Positions 7,615-54,162 of a stretch of 64,000 nt of DNA are shown here, one piece after another. The translations under genes and the position numbers were made by a program. This DNA is from Podarcis bocagei. Lineage: Eukaryota. Position 1 is the first letter of the stretch; the number at the start of each line of letters is the position of its first letter. The DNA is taken from NCBI GenBank assembly GCA_964188305.1, contig OZ076886.1; one strand, written 5' to 3'. The notes under the pieces are model-generated. The model did no database searches. It was not told where the DNA came from and was given only the letters and a program-made list of their open reading frames with translations.

Positions 7615-7845
7615 CAGTGGTACCTCGGGTTAAGAACCCGAGGTCTGTTCTGGAGGTCTGTTCTTAACCTGAAACAGTTCTTAACCTGAAGCACCACTTT
7701 AGCTAATGAGGCCTCCTGTTGTTGCTGCCGCGCCGCCGGAGCACGATTTCTGTTCTCATCCTGAAGCAAAGTTCTTAACCCGAGGTACTATTTCTGGGTT
7801 AGCGGAGTCTGTAACCTGAAGCGTCTGTAACCTGAGGTACCACTG
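7615..7845. mobile_element. Tc1/mariner-type MITE (CAGTGGTACCTC family)
   Basis: TIRs and TA TSDs; ~230 bp. Confidence 0.85.
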
Positions 7846-8215
7846 TATTGCAGTTCTTCTGTGAGCTACATGCAGAGCTGCAACTAACTTTCCAATATTT
7901 TGAGGAAGAGAAATCTCTGCCTCTTGCTGTATTACATTCACACAGGCATCAGACCACTTACAATGCACTAATGTTAGAAGTATATTGATTTGTAAATTCA
8001 CTTTTTAAATTTGAGGTAAAATACTGGCTATAAGCGTGTGCTGAAATGCAGAGGTATAGCAATAGTCAGTGCTTTTTTCTAGAAAATAAGGTACAGGAAT
8101 TCATTGAGAACAGACCTTTGTACTAGTAGTACTGGTGACTTCCCATTTATGTGGGGGTTCTGTTCCAGAACCACATATAATTGTGTATAATGGAGCACTC
8201 TAGTGGCTCAAAGAG

Positions 8216-10242: not shown

Positions 10243-10603
10243 CAGTGGTGCCTCGCAAGACGAAATTAATCCGTTCTGCGAGCCTCTTCGTCTAGCGGTT
10301 TTTTCGTCTTGCGAAGCAACCCTATTAGCGGCTTAGCGGATTAGCGCTATTAGCGATTTAGCGGCTATTAAAGGCTTAGCGGCTATTAAAGGCTTAGCGG
10401 CTATTAAAGGCTTAGCGGATTAGCGGCTAAAAGGCTAGAAAAAGGGGGGGAGCGGGGAAAAATCGGAACACTTGCAAGACGTTTTCGTCTTGCAAAGCAA
10501 GCCCATAGGGAAAATCGTCTTGCGAAGCAGCTCAAAAACGGAAAACCCTTTCGTCTAGCGGGTTTTCCGTCTTGTGAGGCATTCGTCTTGCGGGGCACCA
10601 CTG
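10243..10603. mobile_element. Tc1/mariner (Tigger/pogo-like) MITE with an internal tandem repeat
   Basis: TIR CAGTGGTGCC(T/C)CGCAAGACGAA at both ends, TA TSDs, and an internal (TTAGCGGCTATTAAAGGC)n array at ~10325-10435. Confidence 0.85.
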
Positions 10604-10811
10604 TATCTAAGGCAGTGTTTCCCAACCGGTGTTCCGCGGCACAGTAGTGTGCCGCCGGACGTTGCCTAGTGTTCCGCGTGGAGGCGGCCGAGTCGGGCGG
10701 TGAGAGGCGGGGCGGCGGCGGCGAGCACACGCGGGGCTGCGAGCGAGCGAGCTCCCATATCCCATCGCCGCTCGCTACTGGCCCTGCGCATCCGCTCGCT
10801 ACTGGGCCTGC

Positions 10812-11015
10812 CCCAGGAGGTGGGGTTGCGGGGAATCCCATCCGGGGAATCCCATCCGCCCCCACGTGAGGGGGAGTCCCATCTCAGCCCCCGCGAGAGC
10901 AGGGGAATCCCATCCGGCCACGCCTCCTGGCCAGCCAATCGGCTGGCTGGAGGGGGCGTGGCTTGCCCTTTTTAGGGCCGGAGCAGAGGGGGCTCGCCCT
11001 CTCTTCTCCGGCTAG
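10812..11015 (+). promoter_or_regulatory. Promoter-like GC-rich cargo: clustered kappaB-like sites, E-box, CCAAT and GC boxes
   Basis: GGGGAATCCC at 10830, 10844 and 10902; GGGGAGTCCC at 10871; CACGTG at 10863; CCAAT at 10935; GGGGGCGTGGC at 10952. Confidence 0.5.
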
Positions 11016-11106
11016 CCCCATCGCCGCTCGCTATCGCCGCTCGCTACTGGGCCTGCGCCTGCTCGGCAAGCACACGTGGGGCGGCGAGCGAGCGAGCTCC
11101 CACATC

Positions 11107-11314
11107 TGACGGCACCAAGCAGGGGCCCTTGGCCGTGCCGGTGCCCACCGTGCCCGCCTCCGCCCAGGAGGGCGGCAAGCAGCCACCGCCACCCCCGCCG
11201 CTGCCCGGCAACCGCGCCGCCACCCCCGGCTACCCGCGGCGGGTGATCGTGCAGGCTTCGACGGGCGAGCTGCTCCGCTGCCTGGGGGACTTCGTGTGCC
11301 GCTGCTGCTACCAC
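11107..11314 (+). pseudogene. CDK5R2: Captured internal coding fragment of CDK5 activator p39
   Basis: Translates [16 protein letters not shown]...[10 protein letters not shown]...[27 protein letters not shown], matching recalled CDK5R2 ([10 protein letters not shown]; [26 protein letters not shown]). No start codon, truncated, and inside the hAT TIRs. Confidence 0.9.
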
Positions 11315-11949
11315 ATCGCCGCTCGCTACTGGGCCTGCGCGTGCGCGATCGCGCCTTCGGGATTCCCTTCAGCAGGCATCAAGCAGCCTGCCTCCCTGCT
11401 TTTTCTAATTAAGGGAACCTCCACTCTCCTGCCCCTCGGTGTTTCTCACCCCAAAGCCTTGTGGGCAGCAGGAAGTGGGGCTGTCCTGCCTCTACCCCAC
11501 GCCGGGTGGCTGCTGACACGTCCCTTGGGCAGGAGAGGCATCCGGCTGGATGAAGGCAGCGACGCCGGGGGAACGGAACAGCACGGCAGGTGTGAGTTGG
11601 CGCCTGGAAGGACACAGACTGCTTCATGTAGCTGCATTCAACAGCTCCGAGGCTGGCAGGTGAGTGCGTGCACTCCTCTCTCTCATTTTATTTAATGTGC
11701 ATTTTAGAAGCATGTGGAAATATCCTGCGTCGTCAACCACTTTGGGGAAAGTGTGCGTGTGTGTGTTTGGGGCTAGATTTCATGCATGCCTTTTTTTTTT
11801 AAGTTCTCTTCCTGCTTCATCCACATTCACCCCCCAAAAGGCCATTTTCTGTGTGCTGAATAAATTATGCAACTCAAACGGCACGAGGTGCCAATGCATC
11901 GGGGCTGTGGAATTTATTCTGCTTGCAGAATTCTGCAACTCAACCGCAT

Positions 11950-12145
11950 TTTGATGTTTAAATGTTGTATTTTTATCTTGTTTTTAAGTTATATTTCAAT
12001 CAACCTGTTTTTTATTATTGTTTTTATTTCAGTCGACTTATTTTTTATTTTTTATTATATTTCAGTCGACTTGTTTTTTAATTTGTTGTTAGCCGCCCTG
12101 AGCCCAGTCTTGGCTGGGGAGGGCGGGGTATAAATAAAATTTATT
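11950..12145 (+). mobile_element. LINE-like (L2-type) 3' tail embedded in the hAT 5' arm
   Basis: T-rich tract, then GTTAGCCGCCCTGAGCCC...GGGAGGGCGGGGTATAAATAAA. Confidence 0.5.
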
Positions 12146-12750
12146 TGGGAAAGATGGTTTAGGTATGTCCAAGCAGGCTTGATAGCAAAAACTGTTTCTC
12201 ACAAACTTAACAGCGTATACAGACAGTGGCCTTATTACAGTCTTTTTCAACCGCTGTTAGTGTTTTTCAACCTTTTTAGGTTTTCTGTAAACTGGGGAAC
12301 ACATCCATGTTGGAAGTTCAATTCCTTGCTTAGCCATGAAGCTCAATGGAAATTGCCTTGCTCTTGCCCTCTCTAATCCAGTGTTTCTCAACCGCTGTTC
12401 CGCGGCAGTGCCTCGGGGACCTCGTGGCTTCCGCTATTGCGTGTGCTGCCGTCACTCTTCCCGCCATTCCCATGTATAATTCGTGCCCGTAATACAGGCA
12501 GTAAGAACTGTTCTGTATAACGACTACCCCGCCTCTCCCACCCCATATAAGCCCATTTTTTTTCCTTTGCAGAAATGAGCCGCTGAATTGAGCTCACACA
12601 GTATGCATGTTTTTGCCTGGCTGTGATTGGTCCGGACTCAAGCCTTGACCTATCACAGTGGGACATCATCTTCCGACTTCCTTCCCGCCCGAGCACAGAG
12701 ACCAGGACCCAGCGGGAGTCGGCACCGCAGAGAGGCCGGATACTGGAGTG

Positions 12751-14631
12751 ATGGAAAAGTTTTTGAAAAGAAAAGAACTGGACTCTGAACAAAATTTGGA
12801 GCCAGATGAGAGGCCAAGTACGAGTGGGCATGAAAAGAAAGCAAAGATGGATAGCTCAAGCAAATTCTCTGTCACAAGGCAATATAGCGAAAGCTATATT
12901 TCATTTGGATTTACTTTCACCGGAGATGCAAACCAACCAACTCCACTGTGCGTGGTGTGTGGTGAAAAGCTAGCTAACAGTGCTATTGTGCCAAGCAAAC
13001 TTAAACGCCATCTCCAAACGAAACACCCTTCGCTTAAAAACAAGAATGTGGACTATTTTGTTCGCCTGCGTGAAAACACGGAGAAACAGGCAACTCTCCT
13101 GAGACAAACCTCAAAGGTAAATGAAAGAGCTCTTAAAGCTAGCTATCACGTTGCTGAACTTATAGCCAAGACAAAAAAGTCGCACACTGTGGCAGAGACA
13201 TTAATACTTCCCGCCTGCAAAGCTATTGTGGAGGAGATGCTCGGACCTGAAGCAGCTAAGGAAATAGCCAAGGTCCCTCTCTCAAACAACACAATTTCCA
13301 GACGTATTGATGACATGTCTGCAGACATTGAAAGTGTGGTTTTGGAAAAGATCCATAGTAGTGAGAAATTTGCATTACAACTGGACGAGTCTACTGATAT
13401 CAGTGGACATGCTCAACTCTTGGCCAATGTGCGTTTTGTTGATGGTGATGCAATTAGAGAAAACTTCTTTTTCTGCAAGGCATTGCCAGAAAAAGCAACA
13501 GGAGAAGAAATTTTTCGGGTCACATCAGAATACCTTGAACAAGGAGGACTTAAGTGGGAAAACTGCATAAGTGTCTGCACCGATGGAGCTGCAGCCATGG
13601 TCGGGCACACCAAAGGCTTTGTAAGCAGAGTGAAGGAAAGAAATCCAAATGTTATTGTTACGCATTGTTTTTTGCACCGTGAGACCCTCGTAGCCAAGAC
13701 TCTACCAGCAGACCTAGTTCATGTGTTGGATGATGTTGTGCGCATGGTAAACTTTGTAAAGTCACGACCCGTGAAAAGTCGCATATTTGCAGCCTTGTGT
13801 GAGGAGATGGGAGCGAAGCATAAAACCTTGCTGTTTCATACGGAGGTCCGGTGGTTGTCGCGTGGCAAGGTCTTGGTTCGTGTGTATGAGCTGCGGGAGG
13901 AACTTAAAGTGTTTCTGACAAATGAGAGGACAGATTACGCAAAGCTGCTTGCAAGTGATGAATGGTGTGCAAGGCTGGCATACCTGGCAGATATATTTCA
14001 TCATCTGAATGAACTGAACACACGAATGCAAGGCCGAAATGAAAACCTGCTTACAAGTACAGATAAAATAAATGGATTCCGTGCAAAGCTGCAACTCTGG
14101 CATCAACACGTGGAAAGTGGCAATCTTGAAATGTTCACACTCACCAAGCAATGGCAAGGTGTTCACACTGCTGCACTGTGTGAGATAATAGCTAAACATT
14201 TAAAAACTCTCGAGGGGAAGTTGTCATTTTATTTCTCTTCAGTCTCCACTGAATGCCTTGACTGGGTTAGGGACCCTTATAGCTCAGCATCAGTTGGTGG
14301 AAAGGACATGACTTTACAGGAGCAGGAGGAACTAACTGAACTGAGACAAAATCGTGGTTTCAAGCTAAGATTTGCTGATCTACCTTTGGACAGTTTTTGG
14401 TTGGAAACTGCCAAGGAGTTCCCCCTTCTGGCAAACAAAGCTATTTTGACATTGCTCCCATTTTCCACTACATATCTCTGTGAGTTGAGCTTTTCAAGCA
14501 TGATTGCTATAAAAACTAAATACAGAGAGAGACTGAGAGCTGTTGACGAAGAGCTACGTGTGTGTCTTTCTTCGATTCCAGCCAGAATATCAGCTTTGTG
14601 TTCAGCCAAACAGGCCCAGGTTGCGCACTGA
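12751..14631 (+). CDS. hAT transposase, Buster/Charlie family (ZBED5/SCAND3/FAM200-like), 626 aa from first ATG
   Basis: Uninterrupted ORF with BED zinc finger (CVVC...HLQTKH), catalytic D (QLDEST), D (CTDGA), CxxH (HCFLH), RW (VRWLS) and catalytic E in the C-terminal region (YLCELSFS). The ORF track starts at a GTG at 12658; the first ATG is at 12751. Confidence 0.95.
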
Positions 14632-15190
14632 ATCAAGTATTTTATAATTTTTCATATTTCTGTTTACTTACCATTTCATAATAAAGTAATTATAAAATAC
14701 TTTCTTTGTGTTTATTTGATTCCTATTAAAGAGAGTTACTTTATATATAGTCAATATAGGCAAAGAGTTAATTTTTAAAACATTTTCTAATGGTGGTGTG
14801 CCTCGAGATTTTTTTCATGAAACAAGTGTGCCTTTGCCCAAAAAAGGTTGGGAAACACTGATCTAAGGGGCTGTCACATGGAAGATGGAGCAAGCTTGTT
14901 TTTTCCTGCTCTGGAGGCTAGGACTGGAACCAATGGCTTCAAATTACAAGAAAGGAGATTCCCACTAAACATCAGAAAGAACTTTATGATGATAAGAGCT
15001 GTTTGACAGTGGAACAGACTCCCAGGAGAGGTGGTGGACTCTCCTTTATTGGAGGTTTTAAAGCAGAGGATCTGCCTTAGATGCTTTAGTTGAGATTCCT
15101 GCATTACAGGGGGTTGGACCAACTCTATAATTCTCTGATTCAATGAAAACAACAATGATGTTTAAACATCCAATACAGTTACAGAATCTA

Positions 15191-24895: not shown

Positions 24896-25657
24896 TAAGT
24901 GCTGATGCTCCTGCTTTATTTTCTTTTTAACATATAGCTTTCTACACATATGTCAGGTTACTTTCCTTTTAAACATCAATTAAAAAACAACAACCACACT
25001 TGAAGTCTGGTTTCAAAGTTCTGACCTACTTCACAAATATTAACTAAGCTTAGGCATGTGGGGTATTGCTTCCCTTGCTCTGGTTTGCTATCAGAGCAAC
25101 TTGCCAGCCCTTCTTTGGGCACGGACTCCAGAAGTTCATTTTCATAGCTGTCTGTTCCCCATTAATATGACAATAGTACAATAATGTGTGCTATGCCAGA
25201 AATATCTTGCACTCACTTTAGAAGGGCAGCCTAATCATGCTGTGCTAAGATTTATTCCCAGCATTAAAAACGCATTTTCAAGATGCCAATGGTCCTTTTC
25301 AGTGACTGATCTGGAGAACATTGCAGTTGCATTATAATATTTCTCTCTGAGAGTCAGAGGACGTGAGTACAATCATTGGATGGGTTGTGCAATAAGGCAA
25401 GCCATCACTTATATCTGAAAGATACAGGGAATTAGCATCTAATTGAGTAGGATAAACAAAAGGCATAGAAATGAGGAAACAGTTCCACACATTAGCAAGC
25501 TCCTACATGGGAGGCAATTTGCACCTGAATGAATGTAAAGCCTATGGCAGGAAATGTGACACGTGGCCATAATAGACAAGGGTTTTACTGATGTGTGTAT
25601 ACCAATTTGTACAAAGTTCCTCCTGGAGTCTTAGTGCTCCAAATACCCTTGTACCAT

Positions 25658-26040
25658 GTTGTTGTTGTTGTCGTTTAGTCGTGTCTGACTCTTCATGACC
25701 CCATGGACCAGAGCACGCCAGGCACTCCTGTCTTCCACTGCCTCCCGCAATTTGGTCAAACTCATGCCGGTAGCTTCGAGAACACTGTCCAACCATCTCA
25801 TCCTCTGTCGTCCCCTTCTCCTTGTGCCCTCCATCTTTCCCAACATCAGGGTCTTTTCCAGGGAGTCTTCTCTTCTCATGAGGTGGCCAAAGTATTGTAG
25901 CCTCAGCTTCACGATCTGTCCTTCCAGTGAGCACTCAGGGCTGATTTCTTTAAGAATGGAGAGGTTTGATCTTCTTGGGACTCTCAAGAGTCTCCTCCAG
26001 CACCATAATTCAAAAGCATCAATTCTTCGGCGATCAGCCA
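25658..26040 (-). mobile_element. BovB/RTE LINE 3' fragment
   Basis: Minus strand encodes RRIDAFELWCWRRLLRVP...KLRLQYFGHLMRREDSLEKTLMLGKMEGTRRRGRQRMRWLD, with a (CAA)n tail. Confidence 0.92.
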
Positions 26041-49010: not shown

Positions 49011-49535
49011 AGGCAGGAGAGGATATATTGTTTAATTATATCCTTCCCAACTTGTGTTAACAAGTTCTACAATATAGCAGAGTAACATTCCCCTTTTTAA
49101 ACTTGCACAGTGGATGTCTTTGCCTGGCTTGTATAAACCTCTAAAATAAGTTTCCTTGGTAATTCCCCTTTATTCCCTCATAAAAAGATAGACAAAACAC
49201 AGTCTTGTATAAAAGTATATAAAATAGTTTACTCACATTCTGTTCACAAATGGATCCCAGAAGGCAGACTTAAGTTACAAAATATATACACCTAGAATCT
49301 ATCTCAGTGTTTCCCAACCGGTGTTCCGCGGCACACTAGTGTGCCGCGAGACATTGCCTGGTGTGCCGCGGGAGGGAGGCGGGCGAGTCGGGAGGTGAGA
49401 GGAGAGGCCGCCCAGCGCGGGGCTCTCGCCGTCTGCCTGCCTGGCTGCCTGCGTGGCGCTGACGTCCCGGGGCTGTAACGTGCCCCACATAGGCACACGC
49501 GGGGCGGCGAGCGAGCTCCCTCCCACATCCCATCG

Positions 49536-49915
49536 CCGGCTCTGCACCAGGCGGTAGAGCTCGGCGAAGTCGCCGCGCTGGAAGGCCAGCAGCGCGCGCG
49601 CCTTGGCCAGGCTCTCGCCCGCCTGCGCCTCCAGGCAGGGCGCCTCGGCGTCAGGCGGCAGCGAGCCCAGGAAGCGGCTCAGCCGGTCGGGGTCGCCCGC
49701 CTGCAGCAGCGCCTCGCACACGCACGAGACCTGCTCCGCTGAGAAGCGCGGCGAGCGTGGAGGATCGGGCGCGGCGGAGGCTAGCCCCGCGCTTGGAGAG
49801 GACGCAGCAGCCGTCGCCAAACCCGATCCTCCTCCTCCTGCTCCGCCGCCGTCCTCTGGCTCTCGGCCGGGAGGAGCCTGCGGCGACAGGGCGGGCGCCG
49901 AAGTTGGCAGAAGTT
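49536..49915 (-). pseudogene. SIX5: Captured SIX5 exon-1 fragment A (first part of the SIX domain)
   Basis: Translates PRFSAEQVSCVCEALLQAGDPDRLSRFLGSLPP...ARALLAFQRGDFAELYRLVQSR, matching recalled SIX5 (RFSPEQVACVCEALLQAG...RLSRFLGALPP...ARALVAFQRGEYAELYRLLESR). Truncated; no homeodomain. Confidence 0.9.
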
Positions 49916-50113
49916 ACGCTACGCCACTGCCTAGGACTCAAGCCGTCACCTGGCTTGTCGTCGTTGCTTTACTTTCCGGGCGGAAAGACAGGAGGGTTGA
50001 TCATCTTGCTGGAGTCTGGGCTGCTTAGCGTCGCCCCAGGAAAAGTTTGCTCGGGAGGAGGGGAGCCGCGCGGAATTCAAGCGCGCGCGCTTCCGTGCCT
50101 CGCGCAGCGCAAC

Positions 50114-50126
50114 TTTGCGCGGGAAA
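50114..50126. promoter_or_regulatory. E2F binding site in the captured E2F5 upstream region
   Basis: TTTGCGCGGGAAA contains the canonical TTTCCCGC on the minus strand, ~420 bp upstream of the E2F5 ATG. Confidence 0.55.
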
Positions 50127-50541
50127 TGTCCCCGAGTGAGTGAAAACACCACTGCCGGGCACTTCGAAGGCCCCTTTTTCACCCTCCCCGCCCCGTTTGC
50201 TGCTTCGTTTCCCCCCGGGGGCGAGAGAGGGGCGCAACCACCCCGCAACTCTCTCCCCTCAGGCTCCACCTTCTCGGGAAAGGAGCAGCTGCCCCCTTTC
50301 CTCTGGCTCTTCCCTACACAAAACTTTGTCTCCCGGCAACTGCGCGGGCGGCGTCACTTCCTCTCCCTGCAGGCCAGCCGGCGGTGGGCGAGAAAAGGAC
50401 GAGGGCTCGCTCTTGTGTCTCCGCGGGGCAGCTGCTCCGCGCGGGGACCAGCCGGGCTCCCTCGCGGCCGGAGGAAGGGCAAGCCCGGGGGGGAGAGGGC
50501 CACGTGGGGCCGCCGGAGGAGGTGGGTGGGGGGGATGCAGC

Positions 50542-50733
50542 ATGGCCGCGGTGGCGCTGCCCGAGTCGGTTTCCAGTAGCCATGGCGGCGGCGTGGGGAG
50601 CCTGGAAGGCGGTGCGGGCACCGGGGGCGCCAGCAGCAACAGCAGCCGGCATGAGAAGAGCCTGGGGCTGCTCACCACCAAGTTCGTGTCCCTCCTGCAG
50701 GAGGCCAAGGACGGCGTGCTCGACCTGAAAGCG
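50542..50733 (+). pseudogene. E2F5: Captured E2F5 coding exon 1, with upstream promoter/5' UTR and downstream intron-1 start
   Basis: MAAVALP...[31 protein letters not shown], followed by the donor GCG|GTGAGG at 50734. SSRHEK and LDLKA fit E2F5 rather than E2F4 (PSRHEK, LDLKL). No exon 2 seen in the window. Confidence 0.88.
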
Positions 50734-51003
50734 GTGAGGGGGAGGTGGGGGGCTTGGGTCCAGGCGCTGCGGGTGGGATCCGGGCGCGGAGGGAGGGGCG
50801 TGCATGTGCGTGTGTGTGTGAGACACACACACACACAACGTGGGGTGCGATGGCCCTTGAGGGATCCAGCGGGAGGATCTCTGGACTGGGATCTGGTGAG
50901 GGGAAAAGTTCCATGTTGGGAGTAGGCACCTTTTTAATAACCCACCCCTTTTCTTCAGGCTTTGGCGTATGTGGTTTTGCTGCCTGCCTGGCTGCCTGCC
51001 TGC

Positions 51004-51299
51004 GAGAAGCGCGGCGAGCGCGGAGGATCGGGCGCCCCGGAGGCCAGCCCCGCGCTTGGAGAGGACGCAGCAGCCGTCGCCAAACCCGATCCTCCTCCTC
51101 CTGCTCCGCCGCCGTCCTCTGGCTCTCGGCCGGGAGGAGCCTGCGGCGACGGGGCGGGCGCCGAAGTTGGCAGAAGTTGGCGCGCCTCCTCGGCAGCGCC
51201 TTCGTCCTCCTCCTCCTGCCTCTGCTCTCCTCCGGCAGCGGGGGCGTGCCGTCCTCCCCGGCCGGGGGGCTCGGCGGGGCCCGCGGGGAAGGAGGCCAT
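51004..51299 (-). pseudogene. SIX5: Captured SIX5 exon-1 fragment B (start codon and N-terminus); GC-rich sequence above 51299 is probably its 5' UTR
   Basis: ATG at 51299 gives MASFPAGPAEP...PAAGGE...EEEDEGAAEEARQLL...PRFS, resembling recalled SIX5 N-terminus (MATLPAEP...PAAGGE...EEEEEEARQLL). 51004-51178 duplicates 49741-49915. Confidence 0.85.
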
Positions 51300-54162
51300 G
51301 TTCACGGCGCACGGGATCGCGGCCCCCCTCGCCCACCTCCGGCCCCTTCCCCTCCCCCTGCGCGCTGCCCTAGCCGTGCGGGTCTCCTCCCCCTGCGGCG
51401 CAGTCCCCTTTCCACATCCTAGGAGCCGCGGTCCGCCTTCCGCCCCCGGGCCGCGGCGCGGCTCCCAGCCCGGGCTGGCCTCTGCCTCCTGGGACGCGTG
51501 CCCACCCCCGCGGCCCCCCAAACTTCGGAGCAACTCTCCAGACGCTTCTCCCCCGCCTCGGTCTCCCTCCTTTCCACTTCTCTTCCCCCCTTCCTTCCCT
51601 CTTTCTTTTTCTCTCCCACCCGTCTTTCCTTCTATTAACTTTCCTTTCCCCTTCCCATGTAGAACAGTCCCTGCAAATAAAAACCTAGCATATTTGGAAG
51701 AGGGATGCTAGCCTAACCATTACCTTCTATGCTGTTACTATTTTTTTTTTTTTTTTTACATAAGTAAAAAGTGACCTTTCCCCATCTGGCATGGTGGTGT
51801 GCCTCGAGATTTTTTACATGAAACAAGTGTGCCTTTGCCCAAAAAAGGTTGGGAAACACTGATCTATCTCATAAGGAGATAGTTCTTTTGTCCTCTCTTG
51901 GCTGCAAGCTAAGGCTAAGAAGATGTTGCTTCTTCGAGGAATGGAGTCAGAGAGAGAGATGGCTGCCTCCGCTGAGGTATTTTGTTACCTGCATAGGTGA
52001 GGTCACACCCACCTCTGGTCACATGTAGAAGAAGTCTGTCCCAGCCCAGGAGGAAACAGGAAGTTCTGACTGGCTGGTCCAGACATCCCCTTTTATGTCC
52101 ACTCTAGGAATGTTATATTTGACTGCTCTGTGTTTCACATCCCACAGAAACCTTGGAGGCTCCCTCTTCTTCAACTCAGGATGAGGAGGCAGGCTAGGGG
52201 ACAGGAGGAAGCCCATAGCACTGTTTGAGCTGTCAGGGGAAGAGGACAGCTAGGCATTGTCTCCGAGACAACTAGGAGGCTACATTAGCTTCTTTTATTT
52301 TCCCCATCTAACTACTATTTACCTTGCTGTTCTGTGAGTGGGAAGCTGGCTGAACCCCTGTCTGAAATCCAGGAGAGATGCTGATATGATAGTCAGTGCA
52401 GACAATATGGAGTTAGATGGACCAATGGTCTGACTCAGTGTAAGGCAGTTTCCTATGTTGTACCCAGAAAGTTCTGAGAATGAGTGTTGGTCTCTAATAC
52501 AACCTTGCACTTCAAACCCCTTCCGTATATGGAATTCCAAGCAGGCAAGTGAGAGGACAGAAAGAGGAGAGGCGGAGTGCTCCATTCCTCATCCACTAGG
52601 CCACTTTGTTTCTGTCACTTCCTCTGCCGCTAGGACAGACATGCCGTGGGCTGATAGAAGGCCTTAAAAAAAATGGCATTAGCCTATTAATAGGCTAGTA
52701 GCCGCCATTTCCAATCTGCCACTAAAAGAGGGAGTTTCCTCTGTCCTGTGGCTAGCCTGGAAATTCAGGCTATTAGCCTGTTAGTAGGATAGTTATTTAC
52801 TTGTTTATGTATTGCTGGCTAGCAGCTTTTGTGGGCTTGTTTACAAAAGCTGCTGTCATAAAAGCAAAACAACCAAGCTGATCAAAACATTTTTTTTCCA
52901 GATATGTTAAATAGCCCTGAAAAAATGAAGGTTAGGAAGGATAAAGTATTTGCTCAGTATTTGCTCATTCTTTTCTGCCCTGCTTATTTGCATAAATTGG
53001 GCTTCTTAGCACAATTTGCATAATCAGGCATGTAGTGTACAGCCTCTAGTCCTCCAGGCTAATTTGTATGCTTAAAGAAGCATTTTTTTTAATCAATCTG
53101 TTGATTATGCATATGAACCTAGTGAATTGTGACTGCAAAATCCATCTGGACAAAGGGACACGGAAATGAACACTTTCCTTCTGTATAAGATTCATTCTCC
53201 CAAACCAGCAATTGTCACTGTGAGATATCTTAGGTACTCCTATGTCTATAAAAGTCCATTTTTATATTTTGCTCAGACTTTTCATCGTACAGCTGTGTAG
53301 CTTTCTTTATTGCTTAATTTTATTGGTTCATATCTAATGGGAACTTCTAGTTCTCAAATTTAGCTTGGCATTTATGTTTGTTTTTTAAAATGATTTTTAT
53401 TAACAATATTCTTGGTTAATGTATGTATATTTGTGTCTGTGTGTCCATGTTGTTGTAGTGACTCTTTTAAGCGGTGGGTGAAAGAAATTAGTAAATGTCA
53501 GTGGCTAACTTGTCCCAGCTCAATAAAACTGCCCTGCCCTGCTTGCTACATGAAAGGAGGTGGTAGGTTTTGAGCAAAACTGGGCACTCAAAAGAAGCCA
53601 AAATATGCTGCTAAAATATTCACAGTGCTCTGACAGCATTTTCACTTGTTTGCCTAATTTCTGTATTAATTTCCTGCAGAGTGTAGGAGAAGAAAATTTA
53701 ACTTTATGAGAAAGACAGGATGTCTTTTACACTTGCAACCCCTTTATCCTGGAAGCCTTTGCTGCTGTGAATGCTTGAGATCGATCCTGGGATCTTCTGG
53801 CATGCTAGGCTTGTGTCACAGGCCTGAGATGCTCTCTTGTCTCCCTTTCCATGCTAAAGTACACAACTATTGCTAGGGCTAGAATGATAAATCTCTAGAT
53901 CTGTGCTTGGGTGACTTGTGGTAAGCCACTGTAGCAGAATTACAAGTGTCTGAGCATCCTAACAAAGGGACAAGGTATTCTGTGGAGATAGCATCTCAGG
54001 GTCACATGCCAGTAGAGTGGAGAAACATTCAATTCACCTGAATGTAGTTAACTAAAAGTGGGCAATGAAAGCGGTTAGGTGCTAGCCTGTGAGGCAGCTA
54101 AACCAAGTTGGTTCAGCTACTTTGTTAAAGAGTTCAGGCCTTGAGTTAAAGTCAAGATTTCT

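Follow-up and report, generated by a model that had tools for sequence, protein, structure and literature searches.

The capture of gene fragments by cut-and-paste transposons has been documented extensively in plants; in animals it is rare, and amplified cases are very rare. The closest described animal systems are the Pack-TIR elements, including the Pack-hATs, in which fragments of host genes lie within the intact ends and target-site duplications of a TIR transposon (Tan et al. 2021, PMC8277862). A gap-filling or fork-switching route has been proposed for animal Pack-TIRs; gap filling with template switching is accompanied by a median microhomology of 2 bp, multicopy Pack-TIRs are biased toward GC-rich sequence, and Pack-hAT-N8_XT of Xenopus carries a piece of a 5′UTR (PMC8277862). 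In the largest survey, which covered 100 genomes, only 4 of 370 Pack-TIRs were multicopy (PMC8277862).

The transposon family of Podarcis lizards described here resembles Pack-TIRs in having a parental copy of its cargo elsewhere (E2F5, 95% identity), in the microhomology or filler at its junctions, in the GC-rich nature of the cargo, and in a capture that appears to have proceeded by template switching. It differs from the surveyed Pack-TIRs in that the carrier arm is present at roughly one third of the ~3000-fold depth of the TIR, in that several cargos are stacked, each flanked by re-copied recipient sequence, and in that the cargo lies upstream of an intact transposase gene. Rice Pack-MULEs and other plant Pack-TYPE elements similarly prefer GC-rich 5′ ends of genes, combine fragments of several genes in one element, and are amplified. 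Unlike Pack-MULEs, the Podarcis element is a hAT with an 8-bp target-site duplication in a vertebrate host, and its cargo occupies a one-sided slot by the left terminus, whereas Pack-MULE cargo is central between long TIRs.

A further parallel lies in the repair of hAT transposons and of broken ends in general. Ds elements reportedly arise from Ac by abortive gap repair with filler, and polymerase-theta end joining reportedly leaves templated insertions (Rubin & Levy 1997; Yan et al. 1999; Chan et al. 2010). These events, too, involve a hAT (Ds), internal rearrangements with short direct repeats, filler whose template is nearby or ectopic, and flanks that are re-copied in a stutter. They mostly delete sequence of the element, however, whereas the Podarcis events add 0.2-1 kb of host promoter or exon and their products spread.

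We describe here two elements of this family in a stretch of DNA of 64,000 nucleotides (the window). The family is of the Pack-TIR type among hATs, which is notable because multicopy cases are rare in animals. Being abundant, with an intact transposase and stacked captures whose junctions can be read to the base, it offers a good natural system in which to study the mechanism of capture.

Results and Discussion

Two hAT elements and their transposase

The source of the window is a lacertid lizard, its transposase being 98% identical to Podarcis muralis proteins; P. muralis assembly loci match the window at 95-98% identity. Two hAT transposons of a ZBED5/SCAND3-like family lie in the window. 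Element 1 (10613-14860) is flanked by a perfect 8-bp target-site duplication, ATCTAAGG, at 10605-10612 and 14861-14868, and element 2 (49305-51861) by another, ATCTATCT, and the 15-bp TIR CAGTGTTTCCCAACC stands at both ends of each. Target-site duplications of 8 bp and TIRs of 15 bp were found in six copies, the duplications of three others reading GTGTAGAC (the chromosomal P. muralis copy L004), ATCTAGTC (L005, from Zootoca vivipara), and ATTTAGTC (L006, from a gecko). The 8-bp duplications, the short TIRs, and a hAT-type transposase together place the elements in the hAT superfamily.

The intact transposase of element 1 is an ORF of 626 aa (12751-14631, plus strand). A Pfam scan of the ORF itself returned only a zinc finger, below the cut-off; its relatives carry PF14291, PF27073 (FAM200-ZBED5 RNase-like), and PF27046, and are named ZBED5-like or SCAND3-like. 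At a protein identity of at least 90%, the transposase cluster takes in Podarcis, Zootoca, a gecko, a snake, several frogs, a salamander, a caecilian, and the spider Stegodyphus. Judged by sequence identity, this cross-host cluster, with an ORF DNA identity of 93-96%, indicates recent horizontal transfer. The transferred hAT possibly belongs to the SPIN/Buster group, in which horizontal transfer among squamates has been reported (Gilbert et al. 2012, cited in PMC11008031). The likeness to SPIN/Buster-clade hATs lies in the ZBED5/SCAND3-like transposase and in a cluster that spans lizards, snakes, amphibians, and a spider. Gene capture, a feature of the Podarcis family, is not known from SPIN. 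A literature search for the TIR sequence returned nothing relevant.

The repeat unit as re-copied left arm

The original prediction, made from the window alone, held that a subterminal repeat unit alternates with captured cargo near the left end of element 1. We divided this unit into half A, which starts GCACACG and ends CTCCCA(T/C)ATC (CTCCCATATC in the first copy), and half B, which starts CATCGCCGCTCGCT and ends CCTGCGC. Half A is found at 10725-10762 and 11070-11106, and half B at 10763-10789, 11032/33-11058, and 11314-11340; the expected number of matches for either half in dinucleotide shuffles of the window was 0. The predicted unit, intact at 10725-10789 and recurring at 11017-11106 and 11314-11340, is thus real and beyond chance, and its order of repeat, spacer, repeat, CDK5R2, and repeat was confirmed by the layout and by junction mapping. 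The CDK5R2 piece does split the unit between ...CCCACATC (11106) and CATCGCCG (11314), and the unit of element 2 (49493-49538) does end ...CCCATCGCCG before SIX5, about 8 nt further along. Both cargo identities were upheld by Pfam, with E 1.7e-8 for CDK5R2 (11129-11320; CDK5_activator) and E 7e-15 for SIX (49540-49820, minus strand; SIX1_SD). Three features had been missed: the middle occurrence is permuted, with the second half first (a short B piece, B, a 5-nt linker, and A); an extra partial B lies at 10792-10812; and the arm goes on beyond the final B as far as 11371. Element 1 is laid out as A, B, partial B, spacer, short B, B, linker, A, CDK5R2, and then B with further arm.

In two respects the nature of the unit departs from what had been predicted. 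It is not an independent repeat of the family. Both A copies of element 1 have GAG where ~80% of family reads have TCC, and all four of its B copies lack the same 11 and 17 nt of the native arm, with microhomologies of CT and GGC flanking the two deletions. Because the copies share these private variants, they are local paralogues, duplicated within the element, an outcome that the original prediction had itself named as contrary to it.

Nor is the unit a special subterminal repeat. ORFs reading through the left arm had a single match in the protein database; an arm-reading ORF led to the Logan contig L001, and look-ups of the transposase led to the further family copies L002, L003, and L004. 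In L001-L004 the left terminus is followed by continuous A and undeleted B and then on through ...GCGCATGCGCGAGG...GGGATTCCCTTCA, and the sequence after B is the same as that after the last B of element 1 (11341-11371). Since A and undeleted B are contiguous in these four copies, the unit belongs to the ordinary left arm of one Podarcis lineage, that of L001 and L004. It is missing from the copies of four other hosts, namely Zootoca, a gecko, a snake, and a spider, as well as from element 1's own inner left end, and so cannot be a conserved transposase or stall site.

Numbered along the native arm, with L004 4446 as position 1, element 1 reads as a series of departures from the arm and returns to it, all on the plus strand. 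The conserved left terminus (10613-10680), with the 15-bp TIR and GGCACAC/GTGTGCC subterminal motifs, is the sole part of the left arm common to other lineages and species. It is followed by the lineage-specific GC-rich arm with halves A and B (10681-10789), collinear with L004 4446-4655 and with L001; this first arm copy covers native 1-207. The partial re-copy of B (10790-10812, native ~156-205) leads into filler 1, a promoter-like, GC-rich spacer of 204 bp that is not arm sequence (10813-11016) and contains a CCAAT palindrome and four TCCCATC motifs. Two re-copies of B come next (11017-11058), a short piece of native 152-168 and then 155-207, followed by the linker CTGCT, which is not arm, and by native 105-152 with the second A and its private GAG (11064-11106). 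The coding fragment of CDK5R2, likewise not arm (filler 3, 11107-11311), then gives way to the resumed arm, native 152 to 244 (11312-11371). No return in element 1 lies downstream of the place where the arm had been left, and each step therefore leaves a duplication.

Beyond the arm lie further cargo (11372-12226) that matches no other copy and a block (12227-12750) that is 97% identical to L004 5614-6146, both on the plus strand; the latter consists of degenerate end fragments and an inner left end at 12379 with its 5′ region. The transposase gene follows, and the right TIR (14846-14860, minus strand) and the right target-site duplication, up to 14868, close the element.

Two side observations concern this inner region. 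The two degenerate end fragments, one of the left-end type and one of the right-end type reversed, stand just upstream of the inner left end (12227-12378; L004 5614-5764), and since they are common to two loci at 97% identity, the composite with two left ends is itself a transposing lineage. The transposase region of L004 is interrupted (7665-8058, 13222-13545) by another repeat family, 91% identical, which recurs in the window at 25657-26039.

Cargo flanked by duplicated recipient sequence in element 2

The left target-site duplication and left arm of element 2 (49297-49402) are followed by a 90-bp segment (49403-49492) that is absent from element 1, L001, and L004 and present in ~75% of family reads, and by half A plus CCCATCGCCG (49493-49538), which ends at native position 160/161; these three features are on the plus strand. 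Next comes the downstream part of a SIX5 exon-1 fragment (49539-49915, minus strand), then ~10 nt of untemplated filler (49916-49925), and then the promoter, exon 1, and start of intron 1 of E2F5 (49926-50981, plus strand). This last cargo, recognized through an E2F Pfam match at 50542-50736 and identified as E2F5, is part of a contiguous copy (49923-50981) of the native P. muralis E2F5 locus (L008 2378-3440), with 95.3% identity over 1076 aligned positions (~1.06 kb). A donor alignment was made for E2F5 only, CDK5R2 and SIX5 being identified by Pfam alone, so that it is through E2F5 that the hallmark of a Pack-TIR, host sequence within intact TIRs with a parental copy elsewhere, is observed.

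The junctions of E2F5 are informative in themselves. On its left stands the filler of ~10 nt; on its right, 20 nt copied from the 90-bp segment of the same element are joined by 1-2 nt of microhomology, after which SIX5 resumes (50982-51178 including the insert, the SIX5 part on the minus strand) 186 bp upstream of where it had left off, 49730-49915 corresponding to 50995-51178 at 95.7% identity. The right end and right target-site duplication of the element lie at 51791-51869 (minus strand). A flanking duplication, a templated insert, a short filler, and microhomology are the marks of a template-switch product, and in element 1 re-copies of the arm flank each filler. The duplication of SIX5 around E2F5 makes clear that filler between duplicated stretches of the recipient is characteristic of the insertions in general and not of the unit. 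The array had been predicted to be a built repeat-spacer structure; because repeat-flanked cargo also occurs within the SIX5 cargo, it is instead a by-product of each insertion. The further proposal, that a copy-choice (template-switch) process brought in cargo close to the left end, is supported.

Distribution of junctions and read depth along the arm

A hotspot of capture near the left end was the part of the original prediction that held only partially. Four of the five re-entries of element 1 lie at native 152-156 and the SIX5 junction of element 2 lies 5-9 nt away, at 160/161, so that these junctions fall within 10 nt, tighter than under a uniform model; this cluster at 152-161 comes from only two independent lineages, and copies are not independent events. 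Other junctions are spread along the arm, at native 36-41, 66-69, ~104-116, 205-207, 244, and 305. Of these, 36-41 and 66-69 are points where other subfamilies part from the arm, ~104-116 is the site of the 90-bp insertion, and at 305 L004 carries an insert of 348 bp. The motif at 152-161 holds a CATC tandem, and the spacer has its four TCCCATC motifs; microhomology would be a sufficient explanation for the cluster, and we infer that it played this role at the junctions of the unit.

Two raw whole-genome runs of ~1.9 billion letters each were mapped on 10560-11106, and depths were summed over both orientations. The summed depth was ~3150 at the TIR, ~2150 at 10655-10673, and 1100-1400 at 10674-10730; it was 500-620 in half A, 210-250 at 10769-10787, and 24-37 at 10788-10806. 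At 10678, ~30% of the reads of run X23 go on into an arm of the gecko/Zootoca type, and at 10725 ~75% of reads go on into the 90-bp segment of element 2. Among the loose ends, of which the six strongest per run were listed, is one at 10776, where one contig continues with native sequence, so that part of the fall inside B is the private deletion of element 1. Breakpoints occur all along the arm, and both real junctions and this alignment effect contribute to the steep fall at the unit.

The two junctions of the spacer, 10812/13 and 11016/17, are bridged by contig pieces from independent runs with 1-2 mismatches. By read depth and by contigs they are multi-copy, with variants that show a 41-bp skip or insertions of 7-9 nt, which suggests that the array or its precursors has transposed. 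The right part of the spacer, 10921-11015, is also multi-copy (summed depth ~135-280). In some copies of this part, the sequence around the CCAAT palindrome is rearranged palindromically at 10930/10952.

Directly adjoining element 1 on its left is another TIR element (10243-10604), which starts CAGTGGTGCCTCGCAAGACG and ends CGTCTTGCGGGGCACCACTG; at its right end the summed depth is ~16,000, ~5x that of the hAT TIR, which marks it as a very abundant MITE.

Proposed template switching during repair and its alternatives

The unit is probably arm that was re-copied by microhomology-guided template switching during the repair of a gap or break in a replaceable 5′ slot. Such a slot, between the ~68-bp left terminus that would be required in cis and the start codon of the transposase, would tolerate replacement. 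A break or excision gap in the GC-rich arm would be repaired by copying, with the growing strand repeatedly leaving its template, priming on short microhomologies in GC-rich, CpG-island-like DNA such as the 5′ ends of host genes, and copying a few hundred bases. Once it had re-annealed to the element, at the place where it had left or upstream of that place, the outcome would be a filler with duplicated recipient sequence on either side. Several such events within arm positions 105-207 could have given the succession of arm, spacer, arm, CDK5R2, and arm seen in element 1, and the favoured re-entry at CCCATCG would most simply reflect local microhomology between the CATC tandem of the arm and TCCCATC in the filler. 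Elements that kept both termini could then have been mobilized and amplified. The repair pathway would be synthesis-dependent strand annealing, polymerase-theta end joining, or fork switching. Such a course corresponds to the gap-filling or fork-switching route put forward for animal Pack-TIRs (PMC8277862). It is also similar to the formation of Ds and to the templated insertions of polymerase theta. A unit that is re-copied arm removes the need for a special site and points to template switching coupled to repair.

The main alternative that bears on the unit is a sequence-defined hotspot of acquisition within it, a polymerase stall, hairpin, or transposase nick site, that builds an ordered array of repeats and cargo. 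The cluster at native 152-161 in two element lineages and a fall in read depth of ~94% across 10750-10806 speak for such a site, as do the partial complementarity of A and B and the folding of the element 1 version at -22 kcal/mol (z = -1.97). The native hairpin, however, is not more stable than expected from shuffled sequence (z = -0.40, with 66 of 200 shuffles folding equally well), and the element 2 version gives z = +0.31, so that a hairpin or stall site, for which only element 1 offers a low score, is not convincing. Part of the depth drop is accounted for by the private deletion at the loose end 10776, the remaining junctions are dispersed along the arm, and the same pattern of flanking duplication is found inside the SIX5 cargo, away from the unit. 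A site-specific platform for capture should moreover be conserved wherever the enzyme is conserved, and the unit is not, being absent from the other hosts and from the inner left end. We regard a hotspot of this kind as unlikely. It is rather unlikely that the duplications and fillers were made after insertion, independently of transposition, by slippage and fork switching in the GC-rich, repetitive arm at a fixed locus, as in the single-copy "gap-filling" cases of Tan et al. The arm does hold GCGAGC and CGCTCG repeats, the gecko and snake slots hold tandem repeats, and most animal Pack-TIRs arise without transposition (PMC8277862); yet junctions 10812/13 and 11016/17 of element 1 recur in other runs in multiple copies with variants. 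This alternative differs from the preferred one solely in what triggers the switching.

A composite or alternative-end transposition of the kind proposed for Pack-CACTA in plants would have mobilized the outer left end together with a complete inner element, the cargo being old intervening genomic DNA. Consistent with it are the second left end at 12379 of element 1 within a single target-site duplication and the presence in L004 of the inner block of element 1 at 97% identity. Such an event could not, however, yield a 207-bp piece of coding exon cleanly inside the arm or fillers separated by arm pieces that recur 3-5 times; element 2 lacks an inner end, and the region from the outer arm to the inner block is wholly different in element 1 and L004. 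The composite model may apply to the large-scale architecture but not to the array, of which it is a quite improbable explanation. The GC-rich, repetitive sequence of a multi-copy family also invites the suspicion of an assembly artefact in a collapsed repeat, which is extremely improbable given that contig pieces of separate runs read across the junctions with 1-2 mismatches and that the target-site duplications are perfect.

A replaceable 5′ slot across hosts

The template-switching explanation preferred here presupposes a part of the element that can be exchanged, and comparison across hosts points to one. The transposon is also present in Zootoca vivipara (L005), a gecko (L006), a garter snake (L009), and a spider (L007), in each case with a target-site duplication of its own of 8 bp, with 93-96% DNA identity in the ORF, and with 90-95% in the 3′ arm. 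At the left, conservation among these four copies is limited to the initial 42-73 bp and to ~20-60 bp just ahead of the ATG. The length of the 5′ region, measured from the left terminus up to the ATG, varies between 290 bp and 1.46 kb, and local alignment of the slots of different lineages gave z < 3 for cross-lineage pairs, with one exception, a match of low-complexity GC at z = 5.6. Because this interval, from the terminus (~68 bp, with GGCACAC/GTGTGCC) to the start codon, cannot be aligned between lineages despite the conserved ORF and 3′ arm, it is a replaceable slot, and the A/B arm is, on these alignments, one lineage's filling of it. The inner left end of element 1 has yet another version. 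The Zootoca slot (L005 3320-3615) is GC-rich and 5′UTR-like, with an ATG, a first-exon ORF resembling a signal peptide, and a GT splice donor, and looks like another captured first exon. The snake slot has a promoter-like piece with a donor and tandem repeats.

These contents raise the idea of a general, replaceable promoter slot in a horizontally transferred hAT, filled in lacertids by fragments of host CpG-island promoters and first exons, which is an unlikely reading. If captured host promoters drive the transposase, capture of the 5′ ends of genes would amount to an adaptation of expression to each new host, and the hundreds of Pack-type copies would be by-products. A conserved splice acceptor before the ATG (...GATACTGCAG) was considered as a rationale for the capture of first exons and rejected, because it has no pyrimidine tract and would imply an intron of insufficient length. 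The complete exchange of the contents of the 5′ slot from host to host is an observation in its own right and deserves to be followed up. The native arm itself, with a GC content of 66-80%, may be an old capture of a host CpG-island promoter. It contains GCGCATGCGC (L004 4647-4662; window 11332-11348), which matches the NRF1 binding consensus.
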